Shown: one piece after another, positions 10,830 to 24,600 of the stretch
How the letters are laid out: the number at the start of each line of letters is the position of its first letter
How positions within the stretch are numbered: position 1 is the stretch's first letter
DNA from: Octopus bimaculoides
Lineage: Eukaryota
NCBI RefSeq assembly: GCF_001194135.2
Contig: NC_069000.1
Coordinates: 36,686,336-36,727,778 of the forward strand
Direction of reading: 5' to 3'
DNA length: 41,443 bases
Notes under the pieces: generated by a model
The model's input: only the letters and a program-made list of their open reading frames with translations
Databases searched by the model: none
Told to the model about the DNA's origin: nothing
Made by a program: the position numbers and the translations under genes

Positions 10830-13002
10830 CATACATACACACACACACACAGTTGGCCAGTAAACCAGCCCTGTAAATCTATATGACTCAGAAAGATGCA
10901 TTGCCCCCTACTTTTTCATCATTCACCTCTACCCCCATCCCTAACCACTTGTCGCTCTCCTCCCTCAATCCTATGAACTTGTTCATCCATAACTGATCCC
11001 CTGTCTATATTCTCCTTTATACTTGCCTTCTTGTACCTTGTGAGTAATTTCTGACACTTCATCACTAACATCTTTATCTTCTTTCTCACTACTCAGACAC
11101 ACACTCACTCTTATATAATCCAAGCTAGCCATATATTACTTCCAAAGCAAAACACCTGTACCTGTCTGTTTATTATGCTTAAGCCTCTCAACACCTTTTA
11201 TAAAACCAACTCCCTCTCTACTATAACCCCACTCAGTTGTAGGGACTTTGTCTATTGTTCTTTGTCCCCTAAGTTATTTTGCGACCTCACTAGTGCCAGT
11301 GTCACGAAAATAGCACCCAGAACACTTTCTGTAAAGTGATAGGCATTAGGAAAGGAATCCTGCCATAGAAACTATGTCAAAGCAGACACTGGAGTTCACT
11401 GCTGATTGACTGCCAGTTCACCTGGGTCCTTTCAAACCATTAAGTATGGAAGACAAATGTTAAATGATGGTGATAATGGAGGATGACAAAGATGATATGA
11501 TATATGTCTGTGTGTGTGTGTGTGTGTGTACTATATGCTTCTTTTCAGTTTCTGTTTGCCTCGTCTATTCATGAGGATTTGCTCAACCTGGCCTTATTGT
11601 AGAAGGCACTTTCCTAAGGGGTTATGCTGTGGGATTAAATCCAAAATGACATTGTAAAGGGAACTTTTTAGAACATGGCCATGCCTATATACATATCTAT
11701 ATATGTATGTATGTGCAGCTTTTTTCTTGTCAGACCGTCCAACCCATGCCAGCATGGAAAGCGGACGTTAAATGATGATGTATGTATGTATGTGTGTATG
11801 TATTTATAGGACTTGAGTTTATCCATTTGTTTTATTGTTTGAAATAATGACTTGTAACTCTCATATATATACTTCATGGGTTTTGGCAGTTTATTTGTAA
11901 CAATTCGTAGATGTTTTATATTTGAAATTTTCCAATTTGAACAAGTTTCCATCTATATAAAATATTAAAAAGAAAATGCATACGATAATCTTAAATTTGA
12001 CATTTATTTATTTTCTGCTAAATTTGCTATCTGATTTTACTATTTAATAACATTTACTGATATTTACTATTTTTTTATCCCAAACCAAAACTGATAACGA
12101 AAGCTTGATAATGGTTTTTTAAAAATTTCATAAGAATTTGTGACTTGGTGAGAAATATGTGCCTCAAAGCTGAAAAACTATTGGTGTATTTTGTTAAGTA
12201 AAAAAAAAAATTGAAAATTTATTGAAAATATTGTAATTTTGCCACTTAAATTTGTAAATTATCAGAAGATATAATCTGGTTTTGTATTTTTCTGTAATTT
12301 TTGCTCTTTAATCTGCTTTTAATTCTCCTGATGTGTCCTTTTCTTTTTTATAACTATTAATACTTTACATGCATTTGTGTGGCAAGTGGGTATTGCATAA
12401 AAATAACATGTCTCTTGTTTAATGCTCACTACTAAGCTAGACATTAAATAAACTCTCTTCTCCAAAGTACCATGAAAAAAATTCTCTAGATATATGTATG
12501 GTAACAGAGAGAGAAAGAGAGAGAGAGAGCATTTCAGACTGAATCTATTCCATTTATTGATTAAATGCATTTAGACATATGTGGGATATTTGAGTGTCAT
12601 GTTTGTTTTTATTGTGATGACAAATAAGATATTTCACTTTTTTTTTTTTTAATTTCTTCTTTCAAATTAAGATGTTGAATTTAAAAAAAAAATAACTGAA
12701 ACAAACTTTTTACAGCAGAATTCATTGTTTTGTTTTAGATTTCTTTTTTTTTTCTTCTGAGGTGTGAGAATTTCAATTCTAAATATATTATGTCTTACAG
12801 TCATCTCTACACTCTCGGAGTGGTTGGCGTTAAGAAGGGCATCCAGCTGTAGAAACTCTGCCAAATCAGATTGGAGCCTGGTGTCGCCTCCTGATCCATC
12901 AGTCCTCAGTCAAATTGTCCAACCCATGCTAGCATGGAAAGCAGACGTTAAACGAGGATGAACTTTGATTGAGACACATAACTTATTTAGAATAAATATA
13001 TA

Positions 13003-13382
13003 GGCGCAGGAGTGGCTGTGTGGTAAGTAGCTTGCTTACCAACCACATGGTTCCGGGTTCAGTCCCACTGCATGGCATCTTGGGCAAGTGTCTTCTACTA
13101 TAGCCTCAGACCGACCAAAGCCTTGTGAGTGGATTTGGTAGACGGAAACTGAAAGAAGCCCGTCGTGTATATATGTATATATATGTGTGTGTGTTTGATA
13201 TACACGTTTGTCCTCCCATGCTGGTGTTTACATCCCTGTAACTTAGCGGTTCAGCAAAAAGAGACCGATAGAATAAGTACTAGGCTTACAAAGAATAAGT
13301 CCTGGGGTTGGTTTGCTCGACTAAAGGCGGTGTTCCAGCATGGCCACAGTCAAATGACTGAAACAAGTAAAAGAGTAAAGAG
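13003..13382 (+). repeat. SINE family A, full length
   Basis: Near-identical to the 3453 copy. Confidence 0.9.
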
Positions 13383-13479
13383 CGTATCACTATCTTCAAG
13401 GAAATGAAATAACTTCAGGAAACCAGTCAGTTACCTGATCAGCTATCGAGTTGGTGGATACATAGACCAGATTGACTCT

Positions 13480-14330
13480 ATTCTCTTCAGAAAATAGTAT
13501 AGACAGATGTTTGTGTATGCAAAGTCCTTCCTAGGTGAAGAATGTACAAACCAACATAAGTTGGTGGCTAGTGACTTCAAACTTGGAGCTAGAAGGACTC
13601 AAGAGACACAAACCAGTCTGGAAAAGGATGATATAGAAGAGAAGTACTAGTTGAAGCATTTGACACAAAGTGGGGATGGGGGTGGAGACATACAAGATAG
13701 AGGAGAACTGGAAGATTCTTTGACACAACGTGCTGTGAATGACGGACCAAATATGTGACTACAAAGTTCCCAGCAGGCCAAGTGTGGCTTGTGAATGAAA
13801 CTGTGAGCCATACAGTAAAAAAGACAGCTTGGAAAGACTGGAAAATGGAGGTACCAAAGAATTATATCAGAGAGCTAGAAAAGAAGCCAGGCTACCAGAT
13901 GGAGAAGCAGAAAGATGTTTGCCAATTTTCTACCGTGTGAAGATCAGAAACATGGGGTGTTCCAGGTTGCAAGACAGTGTACCAGTTAGAATCGACATGT
14001 GGATGATAAGTGTGTATGGATGGATAAATTGTACATGTGCAATAAGCAGTTTTGAAAAGAAAGAGGCATGGAAGTATTATTATAAAGTGTGGAGTATGCA
14101 TGGGAGAAAGTGGAACTTCCCAATATGGACTCGACAAAGAATTGTTGATCACTAAATGTGGATAGAACTTGTAGAAGAGTTTGACCCAAGAACACATGGG
14201 ACAAAGTAGTGTAAGATTATCTAAAGATATTGAGCCTTACAGAAATGACAAGGGATCAGGTTGATCAGCTGTACTCAAAACTCGTATTACTGCTCAATAA
14301 ATTACCATGTTCCTTAAATCGTCAGGGACA
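13480..14330 (+). mobile_element. Degenerate RTE LINE, endonuclease C-terminus and linker
   Basis: QIDSILFRK..GEECTNQHKLVASDF; KKTAWKDWK/GGTKELYQRARKEAR; KKEAWKYY. Confidence 0.8.
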
Positions 14331-14689
14331 AAAACATTTCACTTGGACCTAGCAACTTCTACTGAGCGCATGTCACCATTCATGTAAAAAGCAATTAGGA
14401 TTTCTTGCATACATACATATGCACACACATATATATATAAATTCTTATTTATTTGTTTCAGCCATTGGTCTGTGGTCATGTTGGGACACCACATTTAAGG
14501 GTCTAGTCCAGTGGTTCTTGGCCAGGGTCCGTATAAGATTTTGTTGCTAAAATTTGTGCAATAAATTGCTGTAATTTTTTTTATACAATTCCTAATAATA
14601 TTTAATTATAAAAATACAGTAGGATTGTTTTATCAGATGTGATGGATGGGTTTTCTCAAGTAGTGAACCTCCAACCGTCTGTTTTCCTT

Positions 14690-15545
14690 GTCATCTCCTC
14701 TGTGAGAATCCGCTTTCACAACTGCGTCCTGGCAAACACCCACCTGAATTCGAATGTGTTACTGTTTCAGCACAAGATATACTTTTATGATTCCAGTGTT
14801 GTTGCTCTCCTTGTGGCTGATTCTCACCTGACTGGCAAGACCCCAGTACATGGCTTGTATGGATCCCACAAACCATTTTTCTGCTCCTAGCTTCTTTAGA
14901 TACTGCCATATTATGGAGTGAGGGACTATTGAAAACTTTCTCTTGTTCAATGAATGCTTAGTACAATGGCTTGTCTTTAGCTGAATATTTCTCCTGCAGT
15001 TGTCTTCCTAAGAAGCTGGCACAATAAATGTCTAAAATAGTCTAATTTTGTTTCTAAAAAAATTGAGTTATAACTCTCATGACCTAGTCCTGCAATTTGC
15101 TATCTCTGTATTTACTTCTACCTAAGACATCTGCACTACCCTTGTAACAGCTAATGATGCTACATCAGTCACTGGGTATCACATCTTATACAACCTGATT
15201 AACTCTACAGGGGAACTAACTAGACCATATCCAACTCAGCCAGATATTTCAACCATCTTACTGGTGATTCCTTTTGGACTAGAGGCTTTCTGTCTTCATA
15301 TCCTATACAACTTTATCTATCATAGTAAGGTTGTCAACTACGAAAGTTGGTCCCTCTGAATTTTTAAGTGTTTGCTAGGTCTTTGAGCTACTGTATGCTC
15401 CTTTTCCAGATTGGTTTGTCCCCCCCACCCCTGAGTTTTTCTGGCTCTAAGTCCAAAGTCACTAGTCTGTTAGATGTTTGTGAAGAATGCACAGTCTATC
15501 TTATTTCCTGGTTGGAATGCAGCCTGTGCACCCAAATGCCCAATC
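14690..15545 (-). mobile_element. Degenerate RTE LINE (endonuclease end to RT), internally deleted
   Basis: Minus strand reads RPIWKR, IISCYKG..KYR, RQLQEKYSAKDKPLY*AF, IVPHSIIWQYLKKLG..QAMY. Confidence 0.82.
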
Positions 15546-15599
15546 ACAGACACAAGTATATATACACTGAGACAGAGCTAAAGAGAAAAGTGAAAGACA

Positions 15600-16310
15600 T
15601 AAAAATTGATTTCATTATCAACATTTTCTGTTCAAATAACATCCAGCTTTATACTATAGTCTCATTTGTAGCTATACCTCAAATAATTCATGAACATATT
15701 TCCAAGTTAAGGAGTTTCATATTTTCTCCAAAAACATCCAACTGAAATACACTAACAAAACATTTGTCTATATCAAAGTTTCCAACCTAGACAATTCCTC
15801 CATTATTTCTTGTGCTCTATATTGAATAACCCTCGATATATTCTGCTTATTCTTCACTAAACTACAATGGAAAAACCTTCAGGCATAATTTTGGTTCTGT
15901 GTTCCCCACATAGTTCATGTACCTGAAATCTAAGCAGGTGAAACTGCATCTATTGTCATGATCTCATATAAATGTACAAGACCACTTTGCTGGAATTCAA
16001 CAACATGCACACCCAAAACATGTCTTTCTGCAATGTCTATGAACTTTCTGAGCTTTTTAGATATGTACCACCTGGTCAGGTCTCTTTTGTGGAGCCAAGA
16101 TTGTTGATTTCTGGGCATTTTGAGATGACAAACATGTTAAAAAAACAAATCATGGTATTTAGACAAGAATGCTGTATTCCTAGGGTTTCCTGAAAGAGAT
16201 GAGAGACCAGCTGGAACACCATTATTTTCTTTTATCAAGTAATCCATCAGACTTTAACTGAGATTAGTTTCAACCCAATGCCTGCAATTGCAGACCTTGC
16301 ATATTAACTG
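15600..16310 (-). mobile_element. Highly degenerate Helitron Rep-domain remnant
   Basis: Frameshifted LMDYL..SSLSGNPRN..KYHDLFFLT..RPDQVVHI / KKLRKFIDIAERHVLGVHVVEFQQSGLVHLY, in the order of the Helitron Rep motifs (EFQKRGLPH). Confidence 0.75.
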
Positions 16311-16368
16311 CATATCAGGTTGTCAACTGATAGGCTTAAATTGTGTAATACACACACACATATATATA

Positions 16369-16570
16369 AGGAAGTGCTGAAAAGTTCATGGCTTTAAAGG
16401 CCTGATTGGAAGCCCAACACTCCAAGTTCTTTTACAGGGCTTGGGGAAAACTGAAGCACTGCTGCAATAAGTATGTGAATCTGAAAGGCGAATAAGTTGA
16501 ATAAAAGCATAATTAACTGATCCTCCTGTATTTTCATTAACGCAAAGCCAGGAACTTTTCAGCACCTCCT
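16369..16570. mobile_element. Mariner-derived MITE
   Basis: 27-bp TIRs AGGAAGTGCTGAAAAGTTCATGGCTTT / AAAGCCAGGAACTTTTCAGCACCTCCT with TA on both flanks. Confidence 0.85.
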
Positions 16571-17285
16571 TATGTGTGTGTATATATGAGAGAGAGAAGA
16601 GCTATCCAATTCATTTTTGGCAGAAAATCAGATTGCTGTCATTTAAATATTTTTCTTGCTTGGTTGCAAATTTGAGAAGATAAAAATCACAAATATTTAT
16701 CCTTCTGTTACAAAACTATTTAATAGCCAAGTATTTTTCTCACATGACAGAATTAAAGCAATAGATTTGATCAGAATTGCAACACACAATTGTTTAATTT
16801 TTCAAATTTGACCATCTCAAGAAAACAGGGCCCTTTAATTCAATGAAGTTGAAATTTCATCAATATCTAAAAACAAACTTGTAGGTTTCAATTCCCATCA
16901 TATTGACAAGCAGTAGCTCTAATAGACCTACAGAGTAACTTTGTCAGAGACAGACACCTCGTTGAAACACCAGCACTGTCCACACAGGGAGATAATGGCG
17001 GATACACCATTGGATCAAATAAGAGATACAATATGATGAACTGGAGGGGTATGATAGACAGACAAGCACAGGTGTCTTACTAAAGAGAAGTCACACAACT
17101 ACTCATTACATAAGGGATGGAGGTGTATCTGGAAAGATAATATCACGGCGGTACCAGAGCAAACCCTCAAGGAGCTATTTGTAGAAACTGTTTAAATCTA
17201 GTTTCCAAGTCAGTTGCAAAATGTATACATAGAAGTAAATTATTTGTTGAAAACAAAACAACATGCCTATATGCATTTTAAAATT

Positions 17286-17291
17286 TTTATT
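17286..17291 (-). terminator. Candidate distal AATAAA poly(A) signal of PABPN1
   Basis: First minus-strand AATAAA I found downstream of the stop (about 1.3 kb), near the end of the repeat-poor region. Confidence 0.5.
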
Positions 17292-17844
17292 CAAATTTAT
17301 ACATAAATAGAAACATTTTTACCTACATTTCCTCTGCACCTGGCCATGAGGACTGAAAATGATGGCATACAGTCACTAACATCCATATCAATTGTTCTTC
17401 ACAAGAGAAATAACACAACTTGCATACTATGAATATTGCTTCTAGTTAAATGAAATCAAGAGCCAAGCTTGTACTTAAAATTTAAGCAGTAAATACCAAA
17501 TTGATAAGATATAAAGTAGAGTGCCAGTAATTTGAAGTGGAGACATTTTAGAAGAAAGTGAACCAAACGGCTAAACTAAACCATTAACAAAGAAGAAACA
17601 GCGGGAGAGGTTAAAAAGAAACCCAAGACTTGTGGAAAACACAGTTTAGATCCTAAGTCAGATAAATTTTAACATTTATAGTGAGAAAAAAAGCTCATGA
17701 TTTAAGACATTTCGTTTTCTTTTTTTGAATATATTTTTTTGTGAAAAGACAAAAAAATTCATGAATACCTTAATAGCAACTTAGAAAGACATACTTGCTC
17801 AAACAAGTTGACTGCACTTTGACTCTTGCAAATTAGCACAACAT

Positions 17845-17879
<35 letters not shown>

Positions 17880-18559
17880 TTTTAAAACTATTCTTCCCAA
17901 ATCACTTAAATATAATGAAAAACAGTGGAACAGGACTGGCCTAAGCAACTGAAACAAAAGGTTTTCTGTTAATCAACCAGTCAGTTGAACCTAAGTAATA
18001 AACAAGAACTGTTATAGTAGCAGAGATAGAAGAAATCACTTGACTGAAAACTGCACATGAAGGAAAATTCCAGCTAATAATTTAAATATATAATTAAGAC
18101 AATTTAAACTTAACTGGTAGTAATTAATGAATGTATGTTTTTGTGTTACCATGAATGTGTGTTTGTGTGTGTGTGTGTATGTACATATATAAATAAATAC
18201 ACTCATATACATACACAACAAAAAGTAAGCTAGTGCAAAATCTGTTCAAACATACTGTTTGACTTCAACAAAACTCAAAAATTATAAGAACTGACTCAGC
18301 TGAAAGAGCATAAAATATTTTCCCCAGTAGAAAAAAAAACTATTTCATTAATCAAGATACAAACTCCAGACACTTCCATGACAAGCACTCACACACTGAC
18401 CTAGAGTTATCCAAATGGGAGGAAAAATTCTAAAAATTCTGCAAAAATATAAAATAGGCCAGCTGAGTTGAGGGATCAACTAGTTGCCTGTTAGGAGATG
18501 GAAAAAAAAAAAAAAATTAAAAAGCGTGGCAGATGAAATGTAATCTCCTTGAAATTTTC

Positions 18560-18565
18560 TTTAAT
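18560..18565 (-). terminator. Candidate proximal ATTAAA poly(A) signal of PABPN1
   Basis: ATTAAA 30 nt after the stop, with a U15 run (18502-18516) downstream. Confidence 0.35.
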
Positions 18566-18594
18566 ACAATGGAAATCCTCCAAGTAAAGAGTGC

Positions 18595-18631
18595 TCAGTA
18601 AGGCTGGTACCAAAGCGACCTCCGGAAGCGA
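18595..18631 (-). CDS. PABPN1: PABPN1 terminal coding exon 7 ([12 protein letters not shown])
   Basis: Strong polypyrimidine tract and CAG acceptor; phase 2 matches exon 6; ends R-x5-PY then TGA, like the WYSPY end of vertebrate PABPN1. Confidence 0.93.
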
Positions 18632-21600
18632 CTGAAATTAAAAAATAAGAAAAGGAAAAAAAAAAAAGTATCATATATGGATANNNNNNNNNNNNNNNNN
18701 NNNNNNNNNNNNNNNNNNNNNNNNNNNNNNNNNNNNNNNNNNNNNNNNNNNNNNNNNNNNNNNNNNNNNNNNNNNNNNNNNNNNNNNNNNNNNNNNNNNN
18801 NNNNNNNNNNNNNNNNNNNNNNNNNNNNNNNNNNNNNNNNNNNNNNNNNNNNNNNNNNNNNNNNNNNNNNNNNNNNNNNNNNNNNNNNNNNNNNNNNNNN
18901 NNNNNNNNNNNNNNNNNNNNNNATATATATAAATAAATAAATAAATACACACATACACACAGGGTGTCCCAGAATTAACTATTTCAGTGAAATTAGACAA
19001 TTTTTTAAAAATTCACTTTTAATTATGTTCATCATCTTTGATATATGTTAAAAGTGTAAAAATTTATAATTTTCCTTTTTTCTCTTTTGATAATTTTATT
19101 TTCATTTTTGATGGATCCCACTTATCTGCAGAGTTGTTTTTCCAATTTGGTTGCAACCATTTTCTCCAACTCCATCCCCAGGATGGAGCAATAAGTTTGG
19201 CTGAACCTAAAGAATGCATTCAATTAGCAGTGCAGGAGGTAACTCCTGAAATGCTTCAAAATGTGGTTCATAACACTAAAGGATAGATTTGAAATTTGCA
19301 TGGATACAGAGCACATGTTGAAAATTTTCAATACAGTTTTGACATAAGATTTATAAATCCATTTGTTTTGGTATCACAATGATTTAATAAACATAAAATT
19401 GTCAGTTTTTTTTTTTTTTAATTGCCTATTTCATTGAAATAGACAGTTAAATTCTGAGAGACCCTGTACATGTATAAACATTTTTCACATATATTCACAT
19501 CAGCACAATTCACAAAGTCATTCACCTGGATGCTGTGGGTGCCTTGGAAACAAAATGACAGTTGCCATAAACTGTGGAGATTCACATGGTACAATCCTGC
19601 CTGAAGCTTCACTTTGAAAGATGGTGTATGTATAATCTTTATCTGAAGAAGACCCAAACAACAAAGTGTCAATAGCAATCTCAAAAATATTAAAAATTTT
19701 AATTATTGATTGAAATGTCACATCTGGTTATGATTGACTTATTATTTAAATGCCAAATTTAAGCACACGAAAAAATTAAGGCAATGAAACAGCAGGAAAA
19801 AAAAAATATATAAGTAATAATAATTTAGGCGCGAAATGAATATTTTTGAAGAGCTTTCCTCTTGACAATGTTGTTTGGGTCTTAATTTGAACTTGAAATC
19901 ATTGTTGTTCCAGCTTAAAGGAACTAAAGATATATGCTATCAGTCTATAGAGAGCCAAGTAGAATACTCACTATTACAGTAAACTTTAGCAATCCATGTA
20001 AATAAGAGAACAAAAGATTTCAAGTCCAAATGCTGTTAACCATCTGCTAACAAATTAACTTGGCAGTTTACTTCAGAGCAACGGAGGCCCGTAATCATAT
20101 TTGAGCACCAAAAGCAGTTTGGAAATATACAAATATTTTAGAAATAAATTAAGAGTATCTTTGTTACAGAGAAGAAAAAATATATATTTAAAATCGCCAA
20201 AAATTATTCAAAAATTTCCAATAGTGACTGCAGCCTTAATCAGTTATTAAAGTTAGGATTATACACACTATATAATCCAAAATTAAACTGTTTTTAAATA
20301 CAATTATAAACTTTTATAATAATAAAAAATAGTTTCACATACAATTTTAAGATACTCTTAAGACAGGAAATGAACTGTCAATATACATATTCATATGGTT
20401 GTTTATTAGCACTGATAAACTGTATATGCATATGTATATTTTTGTGTGAATATATATGAAGTGTATGTAAATATGAGTGTCTGTGTGTGTATACAGTCAG
20501 TGATAATGCAATGATGAAACAAAAAGCAAATCATACTTGCCTTGGACAGTTGAAAAATAAAGCACACATAACAAAAAATATATTACACTGACCTGTATCT
20601 AGGTCTAGATCTTGGTGCATAAGGATAATATCCAGATCCCATGCCACCTCTGAAATAACTCCCTCGTCGGGAACGCCCTCTGCCACGGTTTGTAGTGCTG
20701 ATACCAGGCCTATTAGTTCTCTTAGCCATTACCTTTTTGACAAAGTAGATAAAAAAAAAAACAAGAAAAAAATTGAAATGTTCTTGTAGTTTCTTTATGA
20801 ATAAGAATGTAAAGGAGTCCAGGACTGCTAAAATGGCCAAAACCATATTTTGCAAAATAAAAAAAAAAAGGAGAAAAATGAAAAAGTTACCAATAATGAT
20901 AAATGCCTTACTGAAGGAATTTATAAAAAAAAGTAAAGAAAAAAAAAATTAAAAAGTTACCGATAATGATAGATATCTTAATGAAGAAACTTAGAAAAAA
21001 AAGAAAAAAATGAAAAGGAAAAAAAGAAGAGAAAATGAAAGAAAAAAGAGCAGGGATGGGTGTAAAAAGAAAAAAATATAACTGAATCGACTTGGGTTAG
21101 TCAACATTTTTTTTAGGGTCCTACTACTCACCTGTACTCTGAAAGAAAAAAAATTCTTATAGAACAATGAGAAAAAATGCATTAAAAAAAATTTCATCAC
21201 ACTTTTTTTCTTTACCTTTTTTCTTTCCTCTTGCTATTTTTTCAATATTTTCTGGAAGAATTTTTTTATGCCTTTAAGTATTGAATATATATATAAATAT
21301 ATATACTGTTCATCCNNNNNNNNNNNNNNNNNNNNNNNNNNNNNNNNNNNNNNNNNNNNNNNNNNNNNNNNNNNNNNNNNNNNNNNNNNNNNNNNNNNNN
21401 NNNNNNNNNNNNNNNNNNNNNNNNNNNNNNNNNNNNNNNNNNNNNNNNNNNNNNNNNNNNNNNNGTTTTTAATTAAAAGCATAGCAAAATATGTGGGATA
21501 GCTTCTGCATCCTAAGTCTTCTAGTACATCTAAACTGACTGATGGAATTTCTGGAAATGGAAGTAGCAGCCATTGATGCTCAAGACACAAAACGTTAGTG

Positions 21601-24600
21601 CCACCTGAGCTTAGATCAATATCAAACACACTGCCAGAATTACAAGAGGCCATGTCTGTAGAGTAGTTACAACTGGGGTTATGTTAAAACTAAGGCTTAC
21701 CTTCAACGTGTGGCACTTCTGCGGCAGACATCCAACACCAATTCCACAATTTTACACAAGTAGCTGGTATTAGAAAACGCCCCATTTTCATTTCGCCATA
21801 ATAATTTTTTTTCCAGAAATTTTTTAAGATTTTTTGCTTTTTTTCATTTTTTTCTAACTTTTTTCTAGCTTTTTTTTTGTATCTTAATTTTTTTAGCAAA
21901 TTTTTTTTCCTGCTTTTTTAAATTTTTTTTTCAAGTTAATTTCTTATGTTGGAGCAATCTCATGATACCAGTATTTCTCCTCTTGAAATGCAAAGCCTCA
22001 TCTGCAAGCCAACCTGTTCTAAACAAAATGGCCGAAAGATCAAATACTGACAGGAAAGCTTACAAAAATACAAAATGTATATATCTTTTTTTCTCTTCTT
22101 TCTTTTTAGGATCTGTCGGCACCTCAGTGTATACATACTAACATGATGGGATGATCATGTATGTAAAGAGGCATACAGTGCAGAGTTAGAGATAAAATAG
22201 AACACAAGATCTTGGAATGTAATAGAATTTCAAAAACAGCATATTTAAGCATTGATGTTACAATTCACTACAAAAATGACAAAAAAAAAAAGAAAAGAAA
22301 AGAAAAAGTTCAGTTAGAACTCTGAGCATCCAATATAAATTAGACGCTATTGCAGGTAACTCGATAGCTGACAACTTAATTATATAATCGTTCATTTTTT
22401 AAGTGCAATGTAAATCATGGTTAAATAGCCAAGCAATACTTCCAAGATCTCTGTTTGTTAATTACATACACAATGTCCAATCTATCTAGCCTTAAAGATA
22501 AGGCACCATTCTTCAATATCTTTTCTTTGGTATGTATTTTTTTAAGTAAACTTTTTCCCCAACCTTATGGTGGGTGACTCCCGCTACATTAAAAGGAAAA
22601 TTTAATATCTCAACTAGTAACAGCTATATTAGAAACTAGAATGGAGTTATTGTTGTGTGTGAAAGGTTTTAACCCCCAACCTCCTTTTATTTCACTGGTT
22701 TAAGTGAAGTCAATGCAATGATGCAGTTTACTTACCTTGATTTGTCTTGCTCGAAAGAGGGACTCATCTAAAGCCATAGCAGTTCCTACTGAGTCTTTAT
22801 CAGCAAATTCCACATATGCAAACCTAAAATTTACAAAGACTCAAATCACGAACAACACACCAAGAAAGTATATTAAAAAAAAAAACACTTTTTAATAAGT
22901 GAATATCTATGTCCTGGTTTTCAATTTCACTTATTTCCAATAATAGAAAGAATACCAATGGGAACAACAAAAATGGTTTTCCCCACTCTCATCACCTAAC
23001 GTCCACTTTTCCAATGCATTCATGGGACAGATGGAATTATCTGAAGTAGATTTTTTACAGCCACACACCCTTCCTGTTTCCAAAAAAGGTAGTATTTTCC
23101 CATAGCCAGAAAGGTTTCCAGATAATTGAAAACAACCTCGAATTTTTGACAATTTAGAACCATTATGTGAAGGGCACAAATACACATATATAGACAACTA
23201 TATATATATATATACGACAAGCTTCTTTCAGTTTCCATCTACCAATTGCACTCACAAAGTTTCCATTGGCCTGGAGCTGAAGTAGCAGACACTTGCCCAA
23301 AGTGTCACATAATGGGACTGAACCCAAGACCACATGGTTGGGGAGCAACCACACAGCCATGCCTACTCCCTAGTGGGATATAACTGTAGAATTCTCCATC
23401 CAAACAAGCTTCACACAAGACATCAACCACTATTTTAGTATTGTTTATTGGCCGTTTTTTCTAATTTACTAATGGAATATATATATTGACTGGACATCAC
23501 AATTCCATAGAAATAAAAACCAATACTTACCCTTTTGGGTGTCCACTGTATTTGTCACACAAGATAGTTACTCTGTTAACTGAACCACAACCATGAAAAT
23601 GTTGTTCTAGTTCTTCAGCAGTGGCACCATAATCAACCTTTAAATAATAATAATAATAACAACAACAACAACTCCAAAGTGCAGAATATTAAGCAAGTTG
23701 ATATGGAGGACTAAATCAATTAATAAATTATCACTATTAATCTGGTATAGAAAACTGAGATGGCATTTAATAAAAATAACCATTTGTGTGTACCATACAC
23801 ACTACTGATAGACCAGTCGCAGCAGTATTTGTCACAGTGGTAGAACCTGTTAAGGTTCTTGTGTTAAAAACAAGGCAGAGAGTGGTGCAAATGTTCCAGC
23901 CACATCTGGCATTCGCAATGGTTGCTGCCAGGACAAACTTTTATCTCTCTGAAATTGTGATTTTAACACAGCAGGACTATAAGAGTAAATACTGCAGTAA
24001 CTGGTCTATCGACAGTGTGTATACAAGTATGATAATCATTATTATTAAATAATAACTTCTTATATAAGTACAAAGTCAAGATTGTTGGAGAACAGTCAAT
24101 TAGATCCAATTCCCAGTACTTGTACTAATAAATACTATTATATATATATCAAGATTTACTTACATTACCAACAAATATAGATCGCTGGTCAGCTTCCATT
24201 TTCTCTTCAAACGTAGGAAAATTTGGTGCTAAAATAAAATACATTGATCTTAATATAATCAATTTATAATAGTCATGTACAATTAATGGATTAAAAGTTG
24301 AAAGTACATAAAAAAGATTTTGATTAGATGGACTCTAGCCACTGCAAACATATTTGGGTAAAGTCTCATATAACAGACATCATGCCAACAGAACTGCTTT
24401 TGCTGTAGTCATCACTAGAATCTACAGATATTCATGGAAAACAACTAAAATATTATGGGAGACAAATGAATGTTTAACATTTAATTAATGCAGGGGTCAT
24501 TAAAAAAAGCTAATGCAACAAGTGGGGAAAAATGTATAGCATTCATGTTTAGATCTTCTCAGTATATGCTACACCATACTTAGAGACATAAAATATTTTG

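Follow-up and report, generated by a model that had tools for sequence, protein, structure and literature searches.

We analysed a 41,443-nt stretch of DNA from Octopus bimaculoides (contig NC_069000.1; hereafter the window), which contains a complete PABPN1 (polyadenylate-binding protein 2) gene of seven exons on the minus strand. On balance, and with modest confidence, we read the 3' half of this gene as carrying two deeply conserved unproductive alternative exons, 5a in intron 5 and 6a in intron 6, by which PABPN1 would limit its own level through unproductive splicing. Homeostatic control of this kind is the most economical reading of the evidence. The first-pass annotation had proposed a larger, multilayer circuit for the region. 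Its core stood: introns 5 and 6 carry exons that are unproductive or remove the C-terminal Pro-Tyr (PY) motif, together with an oligo(A) element. Several of its other layers turned out to be products of chance or mis-assigned features.

The comparisons drew on the loci of O. sinensis (L006), Argonauta hians (L004/L005) and opossum (L019), a gastropod transcript (L014, Logan SRR26439019), a transcript from a JGI metatranscriptome (L001) and Logan assemblies from three SRA runs (L002, L003, L020). Protein look-ups were made in a collection of 15 billion sequences. The window matched O. bimaculoides chromosome CM046620.1 (L007) with 100% identity. The gene was found by tblastn with a human PABPN1 sequence, which located five of the coding exons, all of them on the minus strand, and by reading of the splice sites; the seven-exon canonical structure named by the first-pass annotation was confirmed.

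28053-27952, minus strand: PABPN1 exon 1
25582-25477, minus strand: PABPN1 exon 2
24228-24164, minus strand: PABPN1 exon 3
23637-23531, minus strand: PABPN1 exon 4
22823-22736, minus strand: PABPN1 exon 5, end of the RNA recognition motif (RRM), ...RARQIK; donor AAG/gtaagt; transcripts L001-L013 align
20732-20593, minus strand: PABPN1 exon 6, ends ...RPRY; weak donor CAG/gtcagt
18631-18595, minus strand: coding part of PABPN1 exon 7, 12 residues with the R-X5-PY motif; intron position as in opossum, GRARATSWYSPY

The 214-aa product matches polyadenylate-binding protein 2 from O. bimaculoides and from O. sinensis (P0123) at every residue. It contains a single RRM (RRM_1, E = 5e-16), with a coiled-coil before it and an Arg-rich C-terminus with a terminal PY after it, and is 72-100% identical to annotated mollusc and vertebrate PABPN1/PABP2. 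Judged by its sequence, the gene is the PABPN1 orthologue in both domain content and exon structure. Four protein products that the window sequence predicts have exact counterparts among database isoforms (P0123, P0001, P0121, P0122). Introns 5 and 6 measure 2003 and 1961 nt, estimated runs of N counted in. All constitutive donors of the octopus gene read GTAAGT, save that of exon 6 (CAG/GTCAG, 20592-20587). This non-consensus donor is common to Octopus, Argonauta (L004) and opossum (L019 5677-5682), and the weak donor of the terminal intron is apparently ancient.

The first of the two alternative exons lies in intron 5.

22018/22013-21701, minus strand: exon 5a, 318 or 313 nt, with tandem acceptors TTTAG/A (22018) and AACAG/G (22013) and donor GAAG/GTAAGCC
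22092-22019, minus strand: ultraconserved 3' splice-site region of exon 5a, TTTTTGTAAGC...CCATTTTGTTTAG, from the alignment
21931-21805, minus strand: sense oligo(A) tract in exon 5a, 127 nt, 68% A, 11 runs of A6-A9
22279-22202, minus strand: conserved block of intron 5 (identity 85% with Argonauta, 71% with L012/L013) that supplies one arm of an 11-bp inverted repeat, the other being 22450-22440

Joining exon 5 to 22018 or 22013 exactly reproduces the products RQIK+NRLACR* and RQIK plus 17 residues. Proteins P0121 and P0122, which are isoforms X3 and X2 of O. sinensis and are annotated in O. vulgaris as well, equal these exon 5a products. The stop comes right behind the RRM, about 250-300 nt upstream of the 5a donor, that is, more than 50 nt from the junction. 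Octopus, Argonauta and the other cephalopod transcripts hardly differ in the acceptor region or in the 90 nt that open the exon, and the exon core is 93% identical to L008/L011 over 171 nt, exon start included. A 1-nt indel shifts the downstream frame of exon 5a between lineages, which argues for constraint on the nucleic acid and not on the peptide. The second conserved block of the exon ends in a consensus donor (last exon base 21701), and we predict that this donor is used. Contig L009 stops exactly at GAAGGT, the last bases common to the unspliced path and to the path spliced from 5a to exon 6; this endpoint is suggestive of donor use at most. Exon 5a is a predicted poison exon, with acceptors supported by proteins and a donor supported by conservation. 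The A-rich poison exon of the first-pass annotation is real: it matches P0121/P0122 and is conserved in cephalopods. A search of metagenomes with the 20-nt 5a core gave one match, in a GC-rich bacterial contig, which we judged to be chance.

The A tract of exon 5a is the densest cluster of A runs in the window, where the next best cluster holds four runs. Sense runs of at least six A residues number 10.25 per kb in intron 5 versus 0-2.8 per kb elsewhere. The tract varies in length and sequence, yet O. sinensis, Argonauta, L009 and L012 all keep 9-11 runs. Oligo(A) is the natural ligand of PABPN1. Introns 5 and 6 and the 3' untranslated region (3'UTR) had all been described as rich in sense oligo(A); this holds for intron 5. 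The only long sense A run of intron 6 is an A14 inside a transposon-like element described below, and the A29 of the 3'UTR (17876-17848) is unconserved, with A12 in O. sinensis and no counterpart in Argonauta.

Two side observations concern low-complexity sequence nearby. Upstream of exon 6, about 370 nt (20740-21110) are 48% U with 13 runs of at least six U residues in both Octopus species; in Argonauta, CT microsatellites occupy this place, and only the pyrimidine richness is kept. Downstream of the 5a donor, the O. sinensis counterpart of an assembly gap (L006 13320-13370) contains an extra sense A-rich patch, agaaaaaaaaaagtaaaaagaaaagagaaaaaaaatc. Pairing of the 5a A tract with the U-run region was considered and rejected as low-complexity complementarity, the U runs not being kept in Argonauta. 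Pairing of the 3'UTR A29 with the polypyrimidine tract of exon 7 was rejected likewise as low-complexity, with an A29 that Argonauta lacks.

Intron 5 is also retained in assembled transcripts. Seven contigs from six samples (L008-L013 and the contig behind P0130) run from exon 5 through the 5a region with introns 1-4 spliced out, and their product is RQIK+VSG...*. Two contigs of one sample, L012 and L001, are identical over 647 nt and then split exactly at the exon 5 donor.

The second alternative exon was located in intron 6, together with a potential stem.

19642-19526, minus strand: exon 6a, a 117-nt cassette, cttcag/ATAAAG...CATCCAG/gtgaat, with a stop at bases 2-4
19883-19869, minus strand: 5' arm of the stem, AAGACCCAAACAACA, unchanged in both O. 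sinensis and Argonauta
19663-19649, minus strand: 3' arm of the stem, TGTTGTTTGGGTCTT, which constitutes the polypyrimidine tract (-21 to -7 relative to the acceptor of exon 6a)

Exon 6a opens with A/TAA, so the protein ends in ...RPRYR*, which equals the 203-aa O. vulgaris isoform P0001. Its inclusion drops only the last 12 residues (R-X5-PY), and the 6a-7 junction follows 113 nt after the stop, again more than 50 nt. An insert of 106-118 nt between exons 6 and 7 was present in L001, L002, L003 and L020 and maps to 19642-19526. These transcripts encode cephalopod PABPN1 (86% amino-acid identity, at least three sequence types) of neither Octopus nor Argonauta, and their sources are presumably decapodiform. 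The splice edges are identical in all four transcripts, which come from at least three non-octopod cephalopod lineages. At the nucleotide level, exon 6a is 93% identical to L001 and reaches 90-93% in two of the four transcripts, with the coding exons at 79-87%. It is 100% identical to O. sinensis and differs from Argonauta by two substitutions and one single-base insertion. By these comparisons, exon 6a is a stop-introducing, AG/GT-bounded cassette that appears in real transcripts; the four transcripts and P0001 bear out the YR* cassette proposed earlier.

The peptide that 6a removes is strictly conserved. A PY nuclear localization signal (PY-NLS), recognised for import by transportin, is an established feature of the PABPN1 family. 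The octopus last exon (R-S-L-W-Y-Q-P-Y) fits the pattern R/K/H-X2-5-PY, and 6a excises precisely that. By analogy, the last-exon R-X5-PY is a putative transportin-type import signal in cephalopod PABPN1.

The 15-bp stem is the only GC-containing perfect 15-nt inverted repeat in introns 5 and 6. It is extended by 4 bp beyond a small internal loop and appears in both the minimum-free-energy and the centroid folds, with a z of -2.56 over the 271-nt region. A second stem of 13 bp pairs 20361-20349 with 20161-20149 in intron 6 and is kept in Argonauta. A clean stem of the kind noted in the first-pass annotation does exist, as the 15-bp pair; longer clean inverted repeats in the region are transposon termini.

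To quantify the constraint, O. bimaculoides was aligned with O. sinensis using MAFFT, and the segments were compared with introns 1-4 (p values refer to this comparison).

Introns 1-4: 82.8-87.1%, pooled 84.4% identity, the baseline
DNA downstream of the gene: 85.0% identity, p = 0.5
Intron 5, from exon 5 to 5a: 97.8% identity, p = 2e-27
Exon 5a, 392 nt with flank: 100% identity, p = 4e-28
Rest of intron 5: 91.3% identity, p = 5e-8
Intron 6 upstream of 6a (20592-19643, minus strand): 97.4% identity, p = 6e-35
Exon 6a: 100% identity, p = 5e-9
Intron 6 downstream of 6a, which holds the transposon-like element: 89.5% identity, p = 5e-4
3'UTR: 93.3% identity, p = 7e-19

Introns 5 and 6 diverge far more slowly than introns 1-4, and the constraint is highest on exons 5a and 6a and their splice sites. 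Intronic alignment with Argonauta was confined to introns 5 and 6 (22279-22202, 22105-21536 and 20163-19493), the last of these segments having 75% identity. The nucleotide conservation of 5a and 6a exceeds that of the neighbouring coding exons and is independent of frame. This is the pattern by which ultraconserved regulatory exons are recognised, and both fall in that class. Non-canonical isoforms also exist, as annotations for O. sinensis and O. vulgaris and as assembled transcripts of other cephalopods. Neither of the two outcomes that the first-pass annotation had named as refuting it, a lone canonical mRNA and neutral divergence of introns 5 and 6, was observed. The excess of splice-like sites reported for introns 5 and 6 and the UTR disappeared in simple counts of donor and acceptor motifs. 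The region had also been called poor in short interspersed nuclear elements (SINEs). No intra-window interspersed repeat was found at 14256-22988, compared with about one per 0.8 kb elsewhere in the window; 3 kb of this zone are intergenic DNA free of constraint, and a transposon-like insertion does occur in intron 6.

From these elements we infer a feedback loop. Nuclear PABPN1 in excess would coat the A tract of its own pre-mRNA, with the 5a platform acting as the sensor. Once the tract is coated, splicing would leave the exon 5-6-7 path in favour of retaining intron 5 and including 5a, possibly 6a as well. The diverted RNAs would be retained or degraded, by the nuclear exosome or by nonsense-mediated decay (NMD), or would encode an import-defective protein, and the PABPN1 level would fall. 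The conserved stem may hide the polypyrimidine tract of 6a. Skipping would then be the default, and 6a would act as a second, structure-gated switch.

A related loop has been described in human. Human PABPN1 binds its own 3'UTR, which leads to retention of the terminal intron and decay by the exosome (Bergeron et al. 2015, Mol Cell Biol 35:2503, via PMC5602073). The two systems involve the same gene family and an orthologous terminal intron with a weak CAG/GTCAG donor, as seen in opossum. In opossum PABPN1, every intron is positioned as in octopus (boundaries of exons 2-7), with the terminal intron before the last 12 residues. The opossum 3'UTR (L019 6645-6830) contains 12 runs of A6-A10 within about 185 nt right after the stop. 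These runs are split by single C or G residues, and their form is closely like that of the octopus exon 5a tract with its 11 runs. A near-identical A-run tract beside the orthologous terminal intron strengthens the inference of autoregulation, and the analogy with the human mechanism, drawn in the first-pass annotation, gained support from it. The element bound in human is reportedly an A-rich stretch. Loss of productive mRNA would be the outcome in both systems, as predicted from sequence on the cephalopod side.

The cephalopod gene differs in that it uses the cassettes 5a and 6a and retention of intron 5. Intron 6 retention, the human-type feature, was seen in none of the cephalopod transcripts, and the collection holds no octopus YRSV* protein. 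The A tract lies in the poison exon of intron 5 and not at the start of the 3'UTR, which in octopus is free of A runs; no conserved A-rich element of the human type was found in the octopus 3'UTR. In the gastropod transcript L014 (~795-830), the exon 6 donor GG/GTATGTAGCG (GG/GTATGT...) is read through and the product ends in ...GYVATNGA*. We read this as retention of the terminal intron of the human type. The exon 6-7 junction varies in annotations too, namely those of Physella X2 (P0104) and Littorina (P0015).

Ultraconserved poison exons are reported for the genes of serine/arginine-rich (SR) proteins and heterogeneous nuclear ribonucleoproteins (hnRNPs) (Lareau et al. 2007, cited in PMC5602073; Ni et al. 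2007). The octopus exons resemble these as non-coding cassettes in the gene of an RNA-binding protein, with a premature stop ahead of an exon junction, with nucleotide conservation above that of coding exons, and with likely binding sites for the encoded protein within the exon. They differ in gene and lineage (coleoid cephalopods) and in being two exons with differing consequences. A further parallel is ARGLU1, for which PMC5602073 mentions an ultraconserved retained intron that holds a poison cassette (Pirnie et al. 2016, cited in PMC5602073). In PABPN1, likewise, one intron is both retained (L008-L013) and cassette-bearing (5a), and the whole upstream segment is constrained. The genes are unrelated, and the A-tract content is peculiar to PABPN1. 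Our literature searches returned no paper on PABPN1 poison exons or on cephalopod poison exons.

Several observations weigh against control by unproductive splicing. Neither use of the 5a donor nor splicing from 5a to exon 6 occurs in any transcript examined, and an exact-sequence look-up in the collection found no 5a-spliced proteins of non-octopod cephalopods. The genomic A tract can capture or prime oligo(dT), which possibly inflates the number of intron 5-retaining contigs. The stem shows no covariation, since its pairs never vary in O. sinensis and Argonauta. The Aplysia locus has no homologue of either element by BLAST and no A-tract cluster, so the 5a/6a arrangement is lineage-restricted; none of the cephalopod elements had a BLAST homologue in the Aplysia locus, the gastropod transcript or the opossum locus. 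Finally, only 6a-containing full-length PABPN1 was assembled in non-octopod cephalopods (five contigs), and an exact-sequence look-up found no canonical PABPN1 protein of these animals in the collection. The predominance of 6a among the assembled contigs is odd for an efficiently degraded isoform.

This last point is best accommodated by the main rival, namely that C-terminal switching is the main purpose: 6a would give a stable mRNA and a functional PABPN1 without R-X5-PY, with another localisation or activity, and the conserved 117 nt would be splicing-control or 3'UTR sequence instead of a decay trigger. We judge this unlikely, if by no means negligible, and it is compatible with autoregulation. 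The 6a stop removes exactly the last-exon peptide, all five full-length non-octopod sequences include 6a, and the O. vulgaris annotation includes the YR* protein. Variants ending at the same junction exist in Physella X2, Littorina and, by intron retention, L014. However, a stop alone does not need 117 nt at 90-100% identity, and an exon junction 113 nt past the stop is the classic NMD configuration. The strict conservation of the last-exon peptide implies that the canonical form must be made, and contig counts do not equal expression.

It is improbable that the conserved intronic DNA serves another role, such as an enhancer, an intronic RNA gene or constitutive splicing of long introns, with the alternative isoforms as splicing noise and the intron-retaining contigs as oligo(dT)-captured pre-mRNA. 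That the retaining contigs stop in or just past the A tract would fit such a role, as would a 5a donor known from conservation. Yet the AG/GT edges of 6a match the splice points of four independent transcripts, annotated isoforms from two Octopus species make use of the 5a acceptors, and the constraint peaks on exons and splice sites. No other gene was called in these loci and no Rfam family matched; an Rfam scan of 17000-23000 returned only sub-threshold mir-297-like matches on a (TG)n repeat. The full circuit of the first-pass annotation, which adds microexons, a YRSV* read-through, a distal EFFSWYF exon, a 3'UTR of about 6 kb and an editing-prone UTR stem to 5a and 6a, is very improbable: intron 6 retention would indeed encode YRSV*, and terminal-intron retention occurs in the gastropod L014 and, according to PMC5602073, in human, but transcripts join exons 5-6 and 6-6a-7 directly with neither transcript nor protein for microexons, YRSV* matches no transcript or protein in the collection, the mRNA ends at a conserved poly(A) signal (17291-17286) where L001 also ends, EFFSWYF lies 4.8 kb beyond in DNA at neutral divergence, and the inverted repeat taken for a UTR stem is MITE-like (resembling a miniature inverted-repeat transposable element) and outside the mRNA.

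The features behind this judgement, and the remaining ones in and around introns 5 and 6, are as follows.

18594-17270, minus strand: 3'UTR, about 1.3 kb, with conserved islands 18594-18340 and 17375-17270 and AATAAA at 17291-17286
17269-12437, no strand: intergenic DNA with a SINE (12992-13388) and the MITE-like repeat (16351-16588); 85% identical to O. sinensis, equal to the neutral baseline
16351-16588, no strand: MITE-like inverted repeat, 45 nt, 82% complementary, with a 148-nt loop and CA/TA microsatellite flanks, downstream of the poly(A) site
18957-19470, no strand: MITE-like insertion of about 510 nt in intron 6, with terminal inverted repeats of about 45 nt, ACAGGGTGTCCCAGAATTAAC...
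21316-21464, no strand: assembly gap 1, in intron 5 downstream of exon 5a, bridged by 139 nt of A-rich sequence in L006 (13310-13448)
18684-18922, no strand: assembly gap 2, in intron 6, stopping 52 nt short of the exon 7 acceptor

The L001 transcript aligns as far as 17285, and the final 110 nt, including AATAAA, are 92% identical. The end of L001 and the conserved AATAAA set the 3'UTR at about 1.3 kb; it ends near 17270 and does not reach 12437, as had been claimed. The EFFSWYF exon (12484-12437), for which there is no transcript or protein, was rejected as a chance open reading frame (ORF), and ORFs in 12437-17270 had no Pfam match. The (TG)n/(TA)n stretch at 18151-18224 was rejected as a microRNA gene, its Rfam match to mir-297/mir-466 scoring 49 bits against a gathering score of 90.

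Two islands of the 3'UTR, 18401-18373 and 17364-17341 (minus strand), are its best conserved and contain splice-site-like motifs. The first has GTGAGT (18392-18387) within GGTCAGTGTGTGAGTGCTTGTCATGGAAG. The second reads ATCATTTTCAG/TCC, with AG at 17354-17353, and AG/GTAAAA stands about 35 nt ahead of AATAAA. These motifs might mark a 3'UTR intron or a site for the U1 small nuclear ribonucleoprotein; the region is unspliced in L001 and L002.

The MITE-like element of intron 6 is present in O. sinensis as well, and the Argonauta alignment halts at 19493. The inverted repeat at 16351-16588 is probably another MITE. Both assembly gaps are intronic and break no exon, so the reading frame is unaffected. 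The gap-free O. sinensis locus is collinear on either side of both, and gap 2 is replaced there by 72 nt of TA/TG microsatellite (15851-15922). In Argonauta hians, L004 and L005 encode the same 214-aa PABPN1 with near-identical structure and the same downstream neighbour; the two contigs are either haplotigs or a recent duplication.

The dosage of PABPN1 matters for poly(A) tail synthesis, for the choice of poly(A) sites and for nuclear RNA decay, and in human it is linked to oculopharyngeal muscular dystrophy. To our knowledge, a PABPN1 feedback loop has been described for human only. Under autoregulation by unproductive splicing, the cephalopod gene would build the human logic otherwise, with the A-run element placed in an ultraconserved poison exon and accompanied by a cassette that removes the import signal. 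The A tract, the tandem acceptors and the 15-bp stem form a compact, testable set of cis elements. A stronger version, which we hold to be doubtful, is that a two-exon PABPN1 sensor has been kept since before the split of octopods and squid-like cephalopods, with a mimic of the poly(A) tail reading free nuclear PABPN1 and a stem-gated cassette causing the PY-less form to prevail among processed mRNAs in some tissues. If this were true, most PABPN1 message would be a non-productive or import-defective pool that could be switched quickly to the productive form. Ultraconserved poison exons are known mainly from vertebrates, and octopus PABPN1 would add a clear invertebrate example, whose 5a and 6a isoforms already stand in automated annotation without interpretation. 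The cephalopod arrangement suggests that the control of the last two PABPN1 introns is ancient yet evolutionarily plastic.

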